The translations under genes were made by a program, and so were the position numbers. Positions 5,901-56,053 of a DNA stretch of 64,000 nucleotides are shown piece by piece (positions within the stretch are counted from its first letter, which is position 1; each line of letters opens with the position of its first letter). The stretch lies in the NCBI GenBank assembly GCA_950097015.1, contig CATNEN010000032.1:310001-374000 (forward strand), written 5' to 3'. The notes beneath the pieces were generated by a model. The model worked only from the letters and a program-made list of their open reading frames with translations. It made no database searches and was not told the origin of the DNA. The DNA is from Macrostomum hystrix (lineage: Eukaryota > Animalia > Platyhelminthes).

Positions 5901-8900
5901 TCGCAAAACTCAAAATAAGACAGACTCACAAGAAGGTACACTATAAAATACCCTCTGACTAGATGTACTATAGAAGGCCCACTGACTAGATAAACCATAG
6001 AAGACCCACTGGCTGCTTACGGTACTAAAAACTCACCTGGCTAGAATGAAAGGCGTCCAGTAAAGGCAGGTGAGCAAGGCCGTCTGTGCGGGCTCTCATG
6101 CTAACGTGACAGTCGTACTGCGGCTGCGGCTCAGCCACGCTGTCACCCTCCGGCCAGCGACAGACTCGACTGCGGAGGTAGCGCAACACCAGAAGCCAGC
6201 CGGTCGGTGCAAGGCCGCGTGAAGGACAAGTCCGATCAACGTATTGACACAGGCTGACGCCTGATTCGCCGGTTGCTAGGCGACTATCCGGCAGGTTGCC
6301 CTTAGCAACGCCGCGTTCGGCTATAGACCGAGCTTCAGCTTCGGTGGCTACGGCTAAGTAGGCGTAGTGCTCCGTTGGGCCAGTAGGGGCGGAGGCTAAG
6401 TCATCCGGCCCGGAGGAGGAAGCGGCTACCGAGGCGGCGGCGGTTGACGCGGGGGCGCAAATGGCGGCCTCCGCTTCGGCGGCTGCTGCAGCTGAGCGCA
6501 TTTCAGTTCGCTTGGCTCGAAACTGCCGGGTGGTAGATATTAAATAGGAAACTGAATGCTATGGGCAGTAGCGGTGTTCTGCTGAGGGTTCAGGGAAGTA
6601 GCGGTGTTCTGCTGAGGGTTCAGGGAAGTAGCGGTGTTCTGCTGAGGGTTCAGGGAAGTAGCGGTGTTCTGCTGAGGGTTCAGGGAAGTAGCGGTGTTCT
6701 GTTGAGGGTTCAGGGAAGTAGCGGTGTTCTGTTGAGGGTTCAGGGAAGTAGCGGTGTTCTGCTGAGGGTTCAGGGAAGTAGCGGTGTTCTGTTGAGGGTT
6801 CAGGGAAGTAGCGGTGTTCTGTTGAGGGTTCAGGGAAGTAGCGGTGTTCTGCTGAGGGTTCAGGGAAGTAGCGGTGTTCTGCTGAGGGTTCAGGGAAGTA
6901 GTGGTGTTCTGCTGAGGGTTCAGGGAAGTAGCGGTGTTCTGTTGAGGGTTCAGGGAAGTAGCGGTGTTCTGTTGAGGGTTCAGGGAAGTAGCGGTGTTCT
7001 GCTGAGGGTTCAGGGAAGTAGCGGTGTTCTGTTGAGGGTTCAGGGAAGTAGCGGTGTTCTGCTGAGGGTTCAGGGAAGTAGCGGTGTTCTGTTGAGGGTT
7101 CAGGGAAGTAGCGGTGTTCTGTTGAGGGTTCAGGGAAGTAGCGGTGTTCTGTTGAGGGTTCAGGGAAGTAGCGGTGTTCTGCTGAGGGTTCAGGGAAGTA
7201 GCGGTGTTCTGCTGAGGGTTCAGGGAAGTAGCGGTGTTCTGTTGAGGGTTCAGGGAAGTAGCGGTGTTCTGTTGAGGGTTCAGGGAAGTAGCGGTGTTCT
7301 GTTGAGGGTTCAGGGAAGTAGCGGTGTTCTGTTGAGGGTTCAGGGAAGTAGCGGTGTTCTGTTGAGGGTTCAGGGAAGTAGCGGTGTTCTGCTGAGGGTT
7401 CAGGGAAGTAGCGGTGTTCTGTTGAGGGTTCAGGGAAGTAGCGGTGTTCTGCTGAGGGTTCAGGGAAGTAGCGGTGTTCTGCTGAGGGTTCAGGGGAGTA
7501 GCGGTGTTCTGTTGAGGGTTCAGGGAAGTAGCGGTGTTCTGTTGAGGGTTCAGGGAAGTAGCGGTGTTCTGTTGAGGGTTCAGGGAAGTAGCGGTGTTCT
7601 GTTGAGGGTTCAGGGAAGTAGCGGTGTTCTGTTGAGGGTTCAGGGAAGTAGCGGTGTTCTGCTGAGGGTTCAGGGAAGTAGCGGTGTTCTGCTGAGGGTT
7701 CAGGGGAGTAGCGGTGTTCTGCTGAGGGTTCAGGGAAGTAGCGGTGTTCTGCTGAGGGTTCAGGGAAGTAGCGGTGTTCTGCTGAGGGTTCAGGGAAGTA
7801 GCGGTGTTCTGTTGAGGGTTCAGGGAAGTAGCGGTGTTCTGTTGAGGGTTCAGGGAAGTAGCGGTGTTCTGCTGAGGGTTCAGGGAAGTAGCGGTGTTCT
7901 GCTGAGGGTTCAGGGAAGTAGCGGTGTTCTGCTGAGGGTTCAGGGAAGTAGCGGTGTTCTGCTGAGGGTTCAGGGAAGTAGCAGTGTTATGTTGAGGGTT
8001 CAGGGAAGTAGCGGTGTTCTGCTGAGGGTTCAGGGAAGTAGCAGTGTTCTGTTGAGGGTTCAGGGAAGTAGCAGTGTTCTGCTGAGGGTTCAGGGAAGTA
8101 GCAGTATTCTGCTGAGGGTTCATTGTATACATTTTCAAGGGTCAGGGCTCGAGCCACTTACTTCTTCGTTGAGCGCGCAATTCTCAATCATGAAGGAATC
8201 TTTAATTTTAAACAATTTCTCCTGCTCCCGATTCAGAAATCCGCTGCGCAGCTGCCTGTCTATCTCGGTCCTGAATTCCTTGGAGTCCGGGTCCACTCGC
8301 CGAAGGATTTCTAGGAAGGAAGAAGTGAAAACATAAATGACAGTCTTTAAGTATAAAAATGGGGATCTGGGAAGATAGAGGCTCTAAAAATTGGGATCTG
8401 AGAAGACGGTGGCTCTGAAAATGGGGATCTGAAGACAGTGGCTCAAAAATGGAGATCTGGGAAGATAGTGGCTCAAAAATGGGGATCTGGGAAGATGAAT
8501 GGAGGCTCTGAAAATGGGGATCTGGGAAGATGAATGGAGGCTCTGAAAATGGGGATCTGGGAAGATGAGTGGAGGCTCTGAAAATGGGGATCTGGGAAGA
8601 TGAATGGAGGCTCTGAAAATGGAGATCTGGGAAGATGAATGGAGGCTCTGAAAATGGGGATCTGGGAAGATGAATGGTGGCTCTGAAAATGGGGATCTGA
8701 AGACAGTGGCTCAAAAATGGAGATCTGGGAAGATAATTGGAGGCTCTGAAAATGGGGATCTGGGAAGATGAATGGAGGCTCTGAAAATGGGGATCTGGGA
8801 AGATGAATGGAGGCTCTGAAAATGGGGATCTGGGAAGATGAATGGAGGCTCTGAAAATGGGGATCTGGGAAGATGAATGGAGGCTCTGAAAATGGGGATC

Positions 8901-12468: not shown

Positions 12469-15400
12469 TCACTCAGTATCTTCGGTCAGAACTTCCACGA
12501 TGGTTGCCTCCAGCCAGTCGGCGACGTTGCTACCGACGTTGCCAGCGACGACGCCGCCGCCGCCACCAGCGCGAGGCGGGGCAGTCCTAGAGCAGAAGGC
12601 TTTGACAAAGTCTCGCATACCGCGAGCCCGCAGTTTAGCTTCAGGCAAACTGTACCGATAATGCTCGCCGGGCTGGCACAGGCGCAGCCTGAGTCGATAC
12701 CAGAACAAAGACTCCAGCAGGGCGGTGTTAAGCAGCTGGCTGCACACGACATCGCGCGGCGCCTGTTTGGCCAGAATCTCATAGCCGCCGCAGCAGGAGA
12801 CGAATGCGAAGTAGTCCCGATAGTGGAACAGGGTGTCCACCAGGCGGCGCATGCTGTGATAGGTGGCCATATGCTTGTCCGTGAGCTGGCGGCGAGCGGG
12901 TTGGAGGGAGAGGAACAACCAGGTTTTTTATTTATATATTAGTGCCTCACCCGATATGTATTGAAAAACACAAAAACTACGCAATAGCTCCAAACGAATA
13001 TTCATAGTAATATACTACGCTAATTCACATTGAGGGATTGTGTCGGGCTGAACAAGGGTGATGTGTGGCACAGCGGTTAACGCGTTTATCTCTCGCACCA
13101 AGGTCCTGAGCTCGATTCCGCGATGAGGCTACATTAATTTGGGCCGCAGCCGCGTAGAGAAGGCTTGGGGGCTTGTCGTGCATTTACGCCCCTTGAGGGC
13201 CAAACCCCAAGGCACAGTGAAGGCGTACACTGCCTGACGATGAGAAAGTCAGGGCAGATTTACACACCTGTGTGAGCCTGTGCCTCCTCGCTGGCTGCTG
13301 GCCTCCCAAGTGTCATAAAATAATGTGCCATTGCCCGTAGTCCTCCTGCAATTATTATTTTAACTATTATTACGTTGGAACAAGTCGGAGTCATTCTACT
13401 CGCTGCGCCGATTTCCATTTTGATCTTGATTCTCAACCAGATATGTTTTGAAAAACAAAAAGTTGAATTTTTACAATAGAGAAGATGGACACTACACCTA
13501 GTCCAGCACTAGAGAATAAAATGCGCCACAGGTTTAAGCTCCCATTCTAACGAAAAGCTTTCAGAAAAATGACACATTCCCATCCAGAGGACTCCCAGAA
13601 GACTCACAACAACAGCGTGGCTAGGCCTAATATCCAGCGGCTCCCTGTGGCACTGCATCAGGGCGGTCAGGCAGTCGCGTTCGAAGGCGCGAAACACGCC
13701 GACCCGCCTAGAGAACTTTTCACAGCTGGCGTCAGTCCAACTGGTCACCAGGGTGATGTTTTTGAGCACAGTCTCCAGCCCGGGCTCTACGACAATCTCA
13801 GAGGCGATGGTTTTTATCTCGGCGAGAGCAGCCAGCAGGGAACGCATGTAGGGCACGCTGAGCTTGGACCGGCGATCGCCAACGATTCTCTCCAATATGC
13901 CTGACCAGAATTCGTTCAGTGTAGCGGACAGCGTGGCCAATGCGACCGGCACAGATTCGTCAGTCGTGGCCAAGTATTCGACAACTGCTTGGTACAGCAG
14001 CGAGCCGGAGAATATGCTCCAGCCGACAAAGCCGAACCGACTGGCCCACATGGCCAGGGCGCCGGCTTTGGAAGCTACGTCCGGATCCACACTGCTCTGA
14101 ACGGCCTTGATGTCAATCGAAGCGCTGCTGCTGTCGTGGAAGCCGCCGCCGTCGCCGTCAGTGGTCGCTGGCTTGGATGTCGGCATGAGAGGGCGATGAA
14201 TGCTGAACTCCAGCAAGCCGTAGCGCCTACCGAGGCGCCAGTCGAGGTGACGATCGGCGAACGCCGCCGAACTCACCGTCGCCTCCGGCCCGTTGTCGAC
14301 AATGTCGGCTTCAAGCCTGACGGTGTAAGCCGGCGCAGCAGGTTGACGACCGCGGAATGCGGCTAGGCAGATTCGTCTTAGGTTGCTCTCGTCCAGGATG
14401 CCTGGCGGGACGGTGGCAGCCGACAACAGCTGTCGTCGAAGCTCGGACTCGGAGGGCCAAATCTTGGAAATGGGAGTCTTTGTTGCCATGCAACAGAGAA
14501 CGCCGATTTCTAGACCGGAATTGACGCAGGCCATGCCGTGAGACCATTCCGTTGTGCCGCGGCAGCGCGTCAGGGTCTCGTCAATTAGGAGACGAATAGG
14601 CAGCGACGTCGACTCAGACGGCGAGGCAACAAAGTCAGCGACGAGGTGACTGATGCTGAGGCGGTTGCGACGCAACCAGGCAGCGGGCGGCTGGCCGCGG
14701 AATTTCAACAGCTCCTCGGCGACAGAGTCGGGCAGAGCGTCGGTCTTTGGATCGCGCAGGGCATCGTCTCGATCGTCGCCGAGCAGCTGACCGAGAAGAT
14801 CTGGCTTATCCGAAGATTCCAGCAGGGACTCGGCAATAGCGTCCAAAATTGGCCGGACTTGATCGGCCGAGTCGAAGGCTTCAGCGAATGAGCGAGCTTC
14901 GTCTAGGCGACGATGAATATCCTCGGCTGCTGTTAGGCGACGACGCGAATACGGGGTCAGGTTGAGCATCACAAGGCACTCGATGAAGCCGGCAGCCAGA
15001 GCTGGTCTGACGTACGCGATGACGGCGGCCTTGGCTTCGGCGGCAGCTTTGGCGGCAGCCTCAGCCTGAGGATCAACAGGGGCGTCAGGATTGAATTCGG
15101 CCGGCAGTTTCGGAGCCTCGTCGCTAGTTTCATCGCTGGTCGGTTCGACAGCTGCGGCCTCGTCGGCGCCGGTGCTTTCACTGACGTCGGCGCCGGTGCT
15201 TTCACTGACGTCAGCGCCGATGCTTTCATTGACGTCGACGCGTTTTTCCTGAACCCTCGGTTTCGGCCAAGAAGCAGATGCGGCAACAGCGGCGGCCCGC
15301 TTGCGCTCCAGGTCGCGAGGGGGATCGGCCAGAGCGGCGCGCACCCTGGCTATGGAGCGCTCCAAGTGCCAAACTGCGGGCGAATCCTCGCTGTCGTCCA

Positions 15401-16689
15401 CTTTCACATTCGCAGCGTAGGTTAAGAAGCAGGCGGCTATGGAATCTCGCACACCGGAAACCACATTATAGGGCAGCGGGATGGTCCGCAGACTGGGCAG
15501 TTCAATCTTCGACTCCGTCAGTTGGGGCAGCTGCTTCAGCAGCGCCGGCAGGAGGTCTGGCGCCTCAGTCCAGTCGATTGATCGGCAGGTGGTTGCTCGG
15601 TTGAGCTGCGGCGGTGGCAGACGCTCGGACAGGGCGGCGAAGTTCTCGGCTAATAAGCCGGCAGATGCGGACAGACGGAAGCCGAAATCCTTGGCTACGC
15701 GGTTGACTTCGGTAAGGCCGATTCTGATTGGACGGAGAGACGGCATGGCGCCGCCGCCGCTGGACCCGCCGCAGTGCTGAACTGGCAGATGGCGCACCTG
15801 ATGAATAAGGGATGAATTAAGGGGCCGTTGGCAGAGCGGTCTTACACTCGCACCAAGGTCCCTGAGCTCGATTTCGCGGCGAGGCCACATTCATTTGGGG
15901 CGCAGCCGCGGAGAGAAGGCTTGGGTGCTTGTCGTGCAATTTACGCCCTTGAAAGCCAACCTCCAAGGCACAGTGAGAGTGTTCACTGCCTGACGGTAAG
16001 AAAGTCAGGGCAGATGTACACACCTGTGTAAGCGTGTGTCTGGGTGTGTGTGTGCTCAGGAGTCAGCGAAATGGGCAGAATTGACTCCTTGCTGGCTGCG
16101 GGTCTAGTGTCACGACTAGAAGTGCCATTGCACGCAGCCCTCCGGCAACTATTTTTATTACCTGATGAATGAGCAAGCGGCTGAAGCAGGCAGACATCAG
16201 GTCCACCGCGACTTCGGTGTCGCCAGCATCCGGTGGAGCGTCATTCGCATCGCCATCGGGATCGGCCAGCAAGCCAGCCAGGCAGCAGCTGAGGCGGTCG
16301 GGGCTGGCGGCTAGGAAGCGGCAGAACGCGCCCGGCCTGGCGACTAGTCGAATTGCGTCGGCGCTGAAGTCCAACAGACGGGCCTTGACGCCGGCCAGCA
16401 GGTTGGAGTCGCCATCGGCCGGTCCGACCAGGTCAAAAAAAGTCCGATCCGTTGCGGGCCGGAGCTCCGATGAAGCCAGCAGTCTTGGACGCTTGGCCGG
16501 AGCGCCGCCACCGCCGCCGCCGCTTCCGTTTTGCCTAGCCAAAGCTGCCTTGCCGCCAACATCTTCTTCATCGTCGTTGGAGACGGTCGGTTCGGCTTTG
16601 CGCTTCTGACCAGCGGCAGTCGCCGGCTGGCTGTCGGTCTCGGCTGACAGCGATTCAGCTTTCAATTCAGCATCAGCTTCTTCGGACAT
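12469..16689 (-). CDS. Uncharacterised, mostly alpha-helical protein, ~1044 aa, 3 exons, with an acidic/basic N-terminus (NLS-like KRK, KRPR)
   Basis: Exons 16689-16162, 15797-13608, 12885-12469; GT-AG, all phase 0; long GC-rich ORFs; putative AATAAA at 11792-11797. Family not recognised. Confidence 0.75.
13056..13372 (+). mobile_element. SINE family 1, copy B (intronic, internal deletion)
   Basis: A/B boxes, shared body, (TTA)n tail, possible GAACAAG target-site duplication. Confidence 0.85.
15821..16159 (+). mobile_element. SINE family 1, copy C; makes up essentially the whole 364-nt intron 16161-15798
   Basis: Full-length copy flanked by the 11-bp direct repeat ACCTGATGAAT (15796-15806 and 16160-16170). 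Confidence 0.9.
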
Positions 16690-17725: not shown

Positions 17726-18505
17726 GATGGGGCAAATAGGACGCAGAATGGGATAAGAAACTGAAGGATCGGGTTTTGGGATACTGGACAAAATGGGATA
17801 AGAAACTGAAGGATCGGGTTTTGGGATACTGGACAAAATGGGATAAGAAACTGAAGGATCGGGTTTTGGGATACTGAACAGAATGGGATAAGAAACTGAA
17901 GGATCGGGTTTTGGGATACTGGACAGAATGGGATAAGAAACTGAAAGATCGGGTTTTGGGATACTGAACAGAATGGGATAAGAAACTGAAGGATCGGGTT
18001 TTGGGATACTGGACAGAATGGGATAAGAAACTGAAGGATCGGGTTTTGGGATACTGGACAGAATGGGATAAGAAACTGAAGGATCGGGTTTTGGGATACT
18101 GGACAGAATGGGATAAGAAACTGAAGGATCGGGTTTTGGGATACTGGACAGAATGGGATAAGAAACTGAAGGATCGGGTTTTGGGATACTGGACAGAATG
18201 GGATAAGAAACTGAAGGATCGGGTTTTGGGATACTGGACAGAATGGGATAAGAAACTGAAGGATCGGGTTTTGGGATACTGGACAGAATGGGATAAGAAA
18301 CTGAAGGATCGGGTTTTGGGATACTGGACAGAATGGGATAAGAAACTGAAGGATCGGGTTTTGGGATACTGGACATAATGGGATAAGAAACTGAAGGATC
18401 GGGTTTTGGGATACTGGACAGAATGGGATAAGAAACTGAAGGATCGGGTTTTGGGATACTGGACAGAATGGGATAAGAAACTGAAGGATCGGGTTTTGGG
18501 ATAAT
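17726..18505. repeat. 45-bp minisatellite (atgggataagaaactgaaggatcgggttttgggatactggacaga), ~17 units
   Basis: Direct periodicity. Confidence 0.95.
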
Positions 18506-18591
18506 AGAGAGAATCAGCCAAGGATTAGAAGCTAGATGCCCTCAGTAACCAATAGATTAATTAGTTTCCATTTGAAAGGCTTATCGGCAGC

Positions 18592-53107: not shown

Positions 53108-53467
53108 TTGGCGGCTCCGCCGTGCAGGTGTCCCTACGATGATGGAAGTTTACTAAACTCGTCTGTGCCATCGAGTTGAATTGATTTACTTTTTTTAGAG
53201 CTCAAGTGTGTGATAATTTGTTTTTGTGATAAAGCAAACAGCTGCATGACATTTTTTCATTTTTCGTCTCAATTTTTTTTCTTAAATCACACGTGCTTTT
53301 TATCGAATCTCAGCGTTATGCTGCTTGTTTTTACCTTGCTTTTTTACAATCATTAGAGTGGAGACATTGTCCGGACTCGACAGAAAAAAACAAAAACAAA
53401 CTGAACAATTTTAATTTAATACAAAATGGAATGCTTATTTATCCCGTAATTGAAAGGATACAACAAA

Positions 53468-54718
53468 TTGCTTATCTATCCCATGGGTGAAGAAATGGAA
53501 TGGATTGCTAATCTATCCCATGGGTGAAGAAATAGAATGGATTGCTAATCTATCCCATGGGTGAAGAAATGGAATGGATTGCTAATCTATCCCATGGGTG
53601 AAGAAATAGAATGGATTGCTAATCTATCCCATGGGTGAAGGAATAGAATGGATTGCTAATCTATCCCATGGGTAAAGGAACAGAATGGATTACTAATCTA
53701 TCCAATGGGTGAAGGAATGGAATGGATTGCTAATCTATCCCATTGGTGAAGGAATGGAATGGATTGCTAATCTATCCCATGGGTGAAGGAATGGAATGGA
53801 TTGCTAATCTATCCCATTGGTGAAGGAATGGAATGGATTGCTAATCTATCCCATGGGTGAAGGAATAGAGTGGATTGCTAATCTATCTCATGGGTGGAGG
53901 AATAGAATGGATTGCTTATCTATCCCATGGGTGAAGGAATAGAATGGATTGCTAATCTATCCCATGGGTGAAGGAATAGAATGGATTGCTAATCTATCCC
54001 ATGGGTGAAGGAATAGAGTGGATTGCTAATCTATCTCATGGGTGGAGGAATAGAATGGATTGCTAATCTATCCCATGGGTGAAGGAATAGAGTGGATTTC
54101 TAATCTATCTCATGGGTGGAGGAATAGAATGGATTGCTAATCTATCCCATGGGTGAAGGAATAGAGTGGATTGCTAATCTATCTCATGGGTGGAGGAATA
54201 GAATGGATTGCTAATCTATCCCATGGGTGAAGGAATAGAGTGGATTGCTAATCTATCTCATGGGTGGAGGAATAGAATGGATTGCTAATCTATCCCATGG
54301 GTGAAGGAATAGAGTGGATTGCTAATCTATCCCATGGGTGAAGGAATAGAATGGATTACTAATCTATCCCATGGTTGGAGGAATAGAATGGATTGCTAAT
54401 CTATCCCATGGGTGAAGATATGGATGGAATGGATTGCTAATCTATCCCATGGTTGGAGGAATAGAATAGATTGCTAATCTATCCCATGGGTGAAGATATG
54501 GATGGAATGGATTGCTAATCTATCCCATGGGTGAAGATATGGATGGAATGGATTGCTAATCTATCCCATGGGTGAAGATATGGTTGGAATGGATTGCTAA
54601 TCTATCCCATGGGTGAAGATATGGATGGAATGGATTGCTAATCTATCCCATGGGTGAAGATATGGATGGAATGGATTGCTAATCTATCCCATGGGTGAGG
54701 TAATAGAATGAATTGCTA
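53468..54718. repeat. 37/42-bp family X array, ~33 units, downstream of the TTC39 stop codon
   Basis: Direct periodicity; reverse complement of the 52115 array. Confidence 0.95.
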
Positions 54719-54991
54719 AATTGGCCTTTCAATAAAAATATCAAATGTGACAGCTGCTAGCTTGTATTTGCGGTTTGATATTTTGTCGCGCAGAAGTCTA
54801 ACAAAATGTGTATTTAGTTTTACAGTAATCTGTGTAGAGGAACTGCGTCAGTTTTTTATTTTTAATAAATTAGCATTCACATGTGCTGTGTTATTTCTGC
54901 GGAAAACTGTGTGCGGTTCTGTTTAAGTTATTAGGGCTTGATAATTTAAAGAAGTAAATAAAGCAGTAAACTGCTTCTTCGTCTAGGTTAA

Positions 54992-56053
54992 TTCAGAGGA
55001 CAGTAGAGTGTGATTCAGAGGACAGTAGAGTGTGATTCAGAGGACAGTAGAGTGTGATTCAGAGGACAGTAGAGTGTGATTCAGAGGACAGTAGAGTGTG
55101 ATTCAGAGGACAGTAGGTGTGATTCAGAGGACAGTAGAGTGTGATTCAGAGGACAGTAGAGTGTGATTCAGAGGACAGTAGGTGTGATTCAGAGCACAGT
55201 AGGTGTGATTCAGAGCACAGTAGGTGTGATTCAGAGCACAGTAGAGTGTGATTCAGAGGACAGAGTGTGATTCAGAGGACAGAGTGTGATTCAGAGGACA
55301 GTAAAGTGTGATTCAGAGGAAAGTAGAGTGTGATTCAGAGGACAGTAGAGTGTGATTCAGAGGACAGTAGAGTGTGATTCAGAGGACAGTAGAGTGTGAT
55401 TCAGAGGACAGAGTGTGATTCAGAGGACAGTAAAGTGTGATTCAGAGGAAAGTAGAGTGTGATTCAGAGGACAGTAGAGTGTGATTCAGAGGACAGTAGA
55501 GTGTGATTCAGAGGACAGTAGAGTGTGATTCAGAGGACAGTAGAGTGTGATTCAGAGGACAGTAGAGTGTGATTCAGAGGACAGTAGAGTGTGATTCAGA
55601 GGACAGTAAAGTGTGATTCAGAGGACAGTAGAGTGTGATTCAGAGGACAGTAAAGTGTGATTCAGAGGAAAGTAGAGTGTGATTCAGAGGACAGTAGAGT
55701 GTGATTCAGAGGACAGTAGAGTGTGATTCAGAGGACAGTAGAGTGTGATTCAGAGGACAGTAGAGTGTGATTTAGAGGACAGTAGAGTGTGATTCAGAGG
55801 ACAGTAGAGTGTGATTCAGAGGACAGTAGAGTGTGATTCAGAGGACAGTAGAGTGTGATTCAGAGGACAGTAGAGTGTGATTCAGAGGACAGTAGAGTGT
55901 GATTCAGAGGACAGTAGAGTGTGATTCAGAGGACAGTAGAGTGTGATTCAGAGGACAGTAGAGTGTGATTCAGAGGACAGTAGAGTGTGATTTAGAGGAC
56001 AGTAGAGTGTGATTCAGAGGACAGTAGAGTGTGATTCAGAGGACAGTAGAGTG
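54992..56053. repeat. 22-bp minisatellite (gtgattcagaggacagtagagt), ~48 units
   Basis: Direct periodicity. Confidence 0.95.

Follow-up and report, generated by a model that had tools for sequence, protein, structure and literature searches.

The origin of new spliceosomal introns is a long-standing question. Documented intron gains driven by transposons come mostly from DNA transposons in protists, algae and fungi, and we know of only few cases in animals. That introns may be gained by transposon insertion was proposed early, by Crick (1979) and Rogers (1989), and introns born from transposons are documented for maize (Ds) and for the CatA gene of rice (a p-SINE1-like element), according to the accounts of these works given in PMC3151243 and PMC2394776. 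In human genes four Alu intronizations have been described, all of them alternative and all in the 3' UTRs of last exons, and coding cases were expected by the same authors to be rarer in metazoans (Sela et al. 2007, PMC2394776). Among introner families, about 82% are TIR elements, 12% are LTR elements and about 5% are non-LTR elements, and neither SINEs nor flatworms are mentioned in that work (Gozashti et al. 2025, PMC12130899). A first reading of the DNA studied here, made from its letters without database searches (the sequence-only reading), had called introner families mostly DNA transposons. In the present study, we describe a gene of the free-living flatworm Macrostomum hystrix in which a coding exon is interrupted by an intron composed of a SINE-like retroposon copy and the repeat that borders it. 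We conclude with high confidence that an antisense SINE insertion in a coding exon became an exactly spliced intron by way of its target-site duplication. All positions refer to the window, which is the whole 64,000-nt stretch of DNA that was analysed.

Gene structure and composition of intron 1

The gene lies on the minus strand and consists of three exons. Exon 1 (16162-16689) has 176 codons, from the ATG at 16689 to ...SRLLIHQ with CAG as the last codon, and is covered by transcript contigs that extend up to 16726. Exon 2 (13608-15797) has 730 codons, from VRHLPVQ... to ...RPSHAVV, and is covered by contigs of runs X4 and X5, while exon 3 (12469-12885) contributes 138 codons and the stop codon. 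The summed coding length of the three exons is 1044 codons with an intact frame. Intron 1 (15798-16161, minus strand) is a phase 0 intron of 364 nt with GT..AG ends (GTAATA...TCATCAG); on the gene strand it runs from GTAATAAAAATAG to TTATTCATCAG, and together with its exon flanks the sequence reads ...CTC ATT CAT CAG|GTAATAAAAATAGTTGCC...CCCCTTAATTCATCCCTTATTCATCAG|GTG CGC CAT.... Retention of this intron leads to a stop 32 codons past the donor (ORF 16063-16689). Intron 2 (12886-13607, minus strand) has 722 nt and the ends GTGAGT..CAG. It also houses an antisense, internally deleted copy of the same SINE at 13065-13359, which we regard as a SINE that simply landed in an intron already present. 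The M. hystrix genome contains one copy of the gene, and no paralog or haplotig with an empty site was found in it. Searches of Pfam with exons 1, 2 and 3 separately gave no match, and the protein atlas gave no usable match for the gene product.

Both borders of intron 1 carry an exact 11-bp direct repeat, the 11-mer ATTCATCAGGT, which occupies 16170-16160 and 15806-15796 on the minus strand. The copy on the side of the SINE tail (16160-16170, minus strand) reads ATTCATCAG|GT; its first 9 nt are exonic and its GT (16161-16160) is the splice donor. In the copy on the side of the SINE head (15796-15806, minus strand), the intron ends with the 9 nt of ATTCATCAG, among them the acceptor AG, and exon 2 begins with the GT (15797-15796). 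Exact flanking repeats of 9-19 nt, starting 0-3 nt from the head, are present in 17 of 34 full-length SINE copies. With mismatched flanks as the null, by comparison, a repeat of at least 9 nt appeared in 5 of 1943 trials and a repeat of at least 10 nt in 0 of 1943. Since these null trials never reached 10 nt, the border duplication of intron 1 is unlikely to have arisen by chance.

The remainder of the intron is the SINE-like retroposon copy and a short spacer; the 364 nt hold the SINE copy, the 13-nt spacer and one repeat copy and nothing else. The SINE-like copy (15820-16159, plus strand) is oriented antisense to the gene, with the head (A)GGGGCCGTTGGCAGAGCGG and a degenerate tail, ATTTTTATT, at 16151-16159, which directly adjoins the repeat copy at 16160-16170. 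The spacer (15807-15819, plus strand) is the 13-nt sequence AAGGGATGAATTA between the duplication and the SINE head, and it contains a third GATGAAT, a 7-bp partial copy of the repeat. Positions 15800-15822 read GATGAATAAGG / GATGAATTAAGG, so that 15800-15810 and 15811-15822 make up a tandem pair of 11 and 12 nt, and the spacer probably arose when 12 nt at the head junction were later duplicated in tandem. A spacer of this length is atypical and unique among the copies examined, the others having 0-3 nt at the head junction. On the gene strand it contributes pyrimidines and a TTAAT about 20 nt ahead of the acceptor.

The copy spans the element from head to tail and is 86% identical to a 358-nt family consensus, which was derived from an alignment of 30 copies plus flanks. 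It differs from this consensus by 28 mismatches (about 8% substitutions) and by 21 gap positions in 4 indels, and most full-length copies of the family are 93-97% identical to the consensus. Because of these 28 mismatches and 4 indels, the insertion event is old, not recent; the divergence accumulated since insertion is somewhat lower than the raw count, as a subfamily shares some of the copy's differences. The family has at least 2606 candidate copies in the genome, 40 scored copies are 83-88% identical to the intron, and five further copies lie inside the window. The intron 1 copy has no near-identical counterpart that would mark recent family activity, its best pairwise identity to any other copy being 88%. 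The consensus starts with GGGGGTCGGTGGCAGAGCGGTTAACGCG, ends in an (ATT)n tail and carries an A-box-like motif, TGGCAGAGCGG, at 10-20 and a B-box-like motif, GTTCGATTC, at 55-63. ARAGORN detected no tRNA in the SINE head, and Rfam gave no match to it. Traits of tRNA-type SINEs are present, in that the element is short, non-coding and of high copy number, with a 3' tail of simple repeats and target-site duplications that vary in length. We therefore use the name SINE as a putative label, based on size, copy number, box-like motifs, tail and duplications. No match to the family was found in the 9.7 kb of M. lignano sequence that was searched, which is too little sequence to conclude from.

As a separate observation, the window (1-64000) is unusually rich in minisatellites, with about 25 arrays of 12-47-bp units, some of them with 30-70 copies. 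Examples are found at 6563-8122, 17744-18514, 53467-54719 and 54991-56053, and the strong local swings of GC skew in the window are due to these arrays.

The sequence-only reading had described the intron at 16161-15798 as 364 nt of antisense SINE, spacer and duplication, and each of these parts has been located by its coordinates. Its claim that an 11-bp direct repeat flanks the insert and provides both the donor GT and the acceptor CAG agrees with the exact copies at the two borders, and the lengthening of the donor by the SINE tail is seen in the GTAATA of the gene strand. Two of its descriptions need refinement. What it called a full-length SINE copy does run from head to tail but is not pristine, given its 28 mismatches and 4 indels, and the spacer has the 13 nt claimed but contains the third partial repeat copy and is apparently the product of the 12-nt tandem duplication.

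Transcript joints and the intron-less ortholog

The gene region (5201 letters) was compared with contigs from four runs, taken from Logan. Those that join 15795 to 16160 and skip the 364 nt measure 906 nt (X4), 1159 nt (X5) and 244 nt (X1). The junction is thus supported by three runs from two studies, X1 coming from a different study and under a different organism label. The joint has an 11-nt ambiguity, which is the repeat, and with the cut moved by +2 it shows CT..AC on the plus strand, equal to GT..AG on the gene strand. The bridging contigs carry zero to few mismatches, and across the joint those of X4 (906/906 nt) and X1 (244/244 nt) match the assembly. No other well-supported junction of intron 1 occurs in the contigs, and the spliced form is the only one seen. 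A minor joint, 15772 to 16504 in X4 and X5, was rejected as an assembly artefact, with 21 nt on one side and a location in GC-rich, repetitive coding sequence. The joint of intron 2, 12885 to 13608, is found in X4, X5 and X3, where 722 nt with CT..AC ends are skipped with zero ambiguity. These data confirm that exactly the splice sites proposed by the sequence-only reading are used in X4, X5 and X1, and the transcript joint agrees with its prediction of a 1044-aa gene whose 176- and 730-codon exons are joined as LIHQ|VRHL with a single repeat copy restored.

None of the runs is recorded as RNA. We infer that they are RNA because both introns are removed at canonical sites, because each run has 44-48 million contig letters versus a 220-Mb genome, and because the depth is zero upstream of about 16726 and the unique parts of the introns are uncovered. 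The spliced junction is identical in sequence to that of an empty-site allele, so that RNA data by themselves are no proof of transcription and splicing of the SINE-bearing allele. That the SINE-bearing allele is the spliced one is argued, rather than proven, from the inbred line, the exact contig match at the joint, the age of the copy and the single-copy state of the gene. The assembly, of 220,453,370 bp in 42 contigs, was made from a strongly inbred M. hystrix line (PMC10468722). Contig 20 of X4 has at its 5' end 21 nt that are absent from the genome upstream of 16726. They could be a spliced leader added in trans, and SL trans-splicing has been reported for about 20% of M. hystrix genes (PMC10468722).

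Comparison with M. lignano provides the second line of evidence. A search with exon 2 returned one protein, M. lignano BOX15_Mlig004134g2 (P0001), which has 1045 aa and matches with 48% identity and full coverage. At its locus (L031), residues 1-924 are encoded in one exon, and a single 530-nt intron lies before residue 924. Exon 1 of the M. hystrix gene aligns to residues 35-167, leaving IHQ against RLY (168-170), and exon 2 aligns to residues 171-920 with 48% identity, so that the alignment passes over the boundary of exons 1 and 2 colinear and gap-free. At the site of intron 1, the M. lignano DNA is uninterrupted and reads CTC CGC CTT TAC GTG CGC CAC. Exon 3 aligns to residues 924-1045, and the position of intron 2 is therefore common to both species. 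In an exhaustive representative search with P0001, only P0001 and two fragments matching its C-terminal part were found. The gene may be Macrostomum-specific, as judged from the searched libraries, in which it has no relatives beyond the M. lignano protein and these two C-terminal fragments. The check on orthologs suggested by the sequence-only reading, for which an intron shared at this position would have spoken against a SINE origin, thus found the M. lignano site without an intron and the position of intron 2 shared. From this alignment, intron 1 appears as a lineage-specific gain in the M. hystrix lineage. With one relative compared, the polarity is read as gain rather than loss because the intron holds only the element, the spacer and the duplication.

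Proposed origin of intron 1 and alternative explanations

These results suggest the following origin for intron 1. In the lineage to M. hystrix, a long coding exon would have received an antisense insertion of a SINE-like retroposon of about 360 nt, an element that creates target-site duplications of 10-15 bp. The insertion presumably took place through target-primed reverse transcription with the help of a LINE. The 11-bp target, ATTCATCAG|GT, would have held a proto-splice site, CAG|GT, and the insertion would have duplicated it. The duplication on the tail side would then supply the donor GT, which the reverse complement of the tail would lengthen to GTAATA, and the duplication on the head side would supply the acceptor CAG. 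This acceptor would be preceded by the pyrimidine-rich CCCCTTAATTCATCCCTTATTCATCAG, in which the complemented G-rich head is joined by the spacer and the duplication. The spliceosome would excise the insert together with one copy of the duplication and so restore the frame that existed before the insertion, in phase 0 and with LIHQ|VRHL at the joint. The insertion was then presumably fixed in the species.

Three other histories have to be weighed against this one. The intron could be ancestral, with the SINE inserted later, the remainder of the old intron lost, the repeat coincidental and the intron lost in M. lignano. With two species compared, parsimony alone cannot separate gain from loss, and the copy in intron 2 shows that this SINE also resides in pre-existing introns. 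However, nothing is found in the 364 nt beyond SINE, spacer and repeat; in addition, mismatched flanks never gave an exact repeat as long as the 11 nt seen precisely at both splice sites, splicing leaves exactly one repeat copy, and the M. lignano coding sequence is colinear and gap-free at the site. We regard this history as extremely improbable. Scarcely any more weight can be given to a capture event, in which a SINE cDNA or DNA fragment served as filler in the repair of a double-strand break and the repair itself made the direct repeats. The irregular 5' junction, with 13 extra nt and a third partial repeat against 0-3 nt elsewhere, is what such an event might leave, yet a later 12-nt tandem duplication accounts for the spacer. 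The copy moreover begins at the first G of the head and extends into the (ATT)-type tail, which directly adjoins the repeat as in ordinary copies, and the 11-bp repeat falls within the 9-19-bp range of the family.

A further explanation concerns the source of the transcripts. The insertion could be disabling or polymorphic and remain unspliced, with the mRNAs deriving from a SINE-free allele, strain or species. In its favour, the joined form equals an empty site, with the 11-nt ambiguity, and the records identify none of the runs as RNA from the assembled individual. Against it, the assembly comes from a strongly inbred line, the contigs of X4 and X1 are identical to the assembly across the joint (906/906 and 244/244 nt), and the gene is single copy. 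With about 8% substitutions and 4 indels the insertion is also far older than ordinary polymorphism, and yet the frames that flank it are intact. We consider this explanation very unlikely. An origin by tandem duplication of an AGGT exon segment was rejected, only 11 bp and a 7-bp partial copy being duplicated while about 340 nt are the element. Insertion of the SINE into a coding exon, followed by its exact removal through the duplicated target site, remains the reading that we prefer.

Recurrence and comparison with known systems

Whether the family has formed introns elsewhere was examined at several levels. When 66 SINE copies were excised in silico, only the intron 1 copy joined long reading frames, and none of the other 65 did. 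The pattern AGGTAAT..GGAGGGCTGCG has 14 matches genome-wide. In 4 of them the duplication ends in AGGT, and the intron 1 locus alone is coding. The pattern AGGTA..GCTCTGCCA..AGGT has 11 genome matches, a count of the pattern alone in which coding context plays no part. Among SINEs near RasGAP exons (L054, L057 and L060; RasGAP and SH2 loci were searched), no clean exon insertion was found. Two other loci were noted. In L038 (G000:C3:5591382-5594421), a SINE at about 1174-1524 has a 19-bp target-site duplication that reads ...ATAG|GTAAGAC on the opposite strand; this insertion seems to have copied a donor-like site that was already there, and the flanking open frames are short. In L043 (G000:C29:956911-959957), an antisense SINE with a 10-11-bp duplication, TACTGCAGGT, shows the same AG|GT geometry as intron 1 and is flanked by open frames of 29 and 25 codons, which could be a second case with short exons or a chance match.

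The sequence-only reading had spoken of a retroposon introner and of a family predisposed to intron gain by its TTA tail; in the copies and pattern matches screened, the intron 1 copy is the single one that qualifies. The ends of the element deserve attention in this regard. It is plausible from their sequence that the antisense ends of the SINE would favour intron formation by mimicking the ends of an intron. The complement of the (ATT)n tail would extend the donor to GTAATAAT, and the complement of the G-rich head would give CCGCTCTGCCACCGACCCCC as a polypyrimidine tract. The antisense 3' end of the consensus is CGCGTTAACCGCTCTGCCACCGACCCCC, a pyrimidine tract with TTAAC, and this TTAAC, about 22 nt from the end of the head, could act as a branch point. 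That the family is a retroposon introner in a bilaterian, whose antisense insertions into exonic AG|GT repeatedly became coding introns, is a tentative proposal to which we give somewhat less than an even chance. Should further cases in this genome prove real, M. hystrix would be an animal in which the frequency of such gains, and the sequence features that enable them, are tractable to study.

What makes the locus valuable is that every step can be seen in a bilaterian, from the proto-splice target, the duplication with its GT and AG and the context provided by the element ends to the exact removal from mRNA and the intron-less ortholog. It shows that splicing can immediately neutralise a retroposon inserted in an exon, and that no pre-adapted introner element is needed for this. 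In introners, too, splicing removes a transposable element that entered an exon, and the splice signals come from the duplication and the element ends (PMC12130899). Introner families, however, consist of many near-identical introns in different genes (PMC12130899), whereas one old event is demonstrated in M. hystrix. The human Alu intronizations differ in another way, as their splice sites lie inside the Alu or come from later mutation and the sequence is either retained or spliced (PMC2394776). In contrast, the M. hystrix intron is in coding sequence, owes both of its sites to the target-site duplication and is seen in the spliced state only. In the AGGT tandem-duplication model (Rogers 1989), as presented in PMC3151243 and PMC2394776, the duplication of AG|GT likewise creates donor and acceptor and the message is restored. 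The intron of that model, as these papers outline it, is duplicated exon sequence, whereas in M. hystrix 11 bp were duplicated by transposition and the body of the intron is foreign.

The classical precedent is the p-SINE1-like intron of rice CatA (Iwamoto et al. 1998, 1999), in which likewise a SINE in coding sequence became a spliceosomal intron, although in a plant and from another SINE family. Compared with the rice case as it is described in the papers citing it, the M. hystrix case adds a duplication from which GT and AG both derive, support from transcripts, and an ortholog lacking the intron. The M. hystrix locus is thus not a new kind of intron gain; it is an unusually clean animal example of a route that is known and rarely documented.
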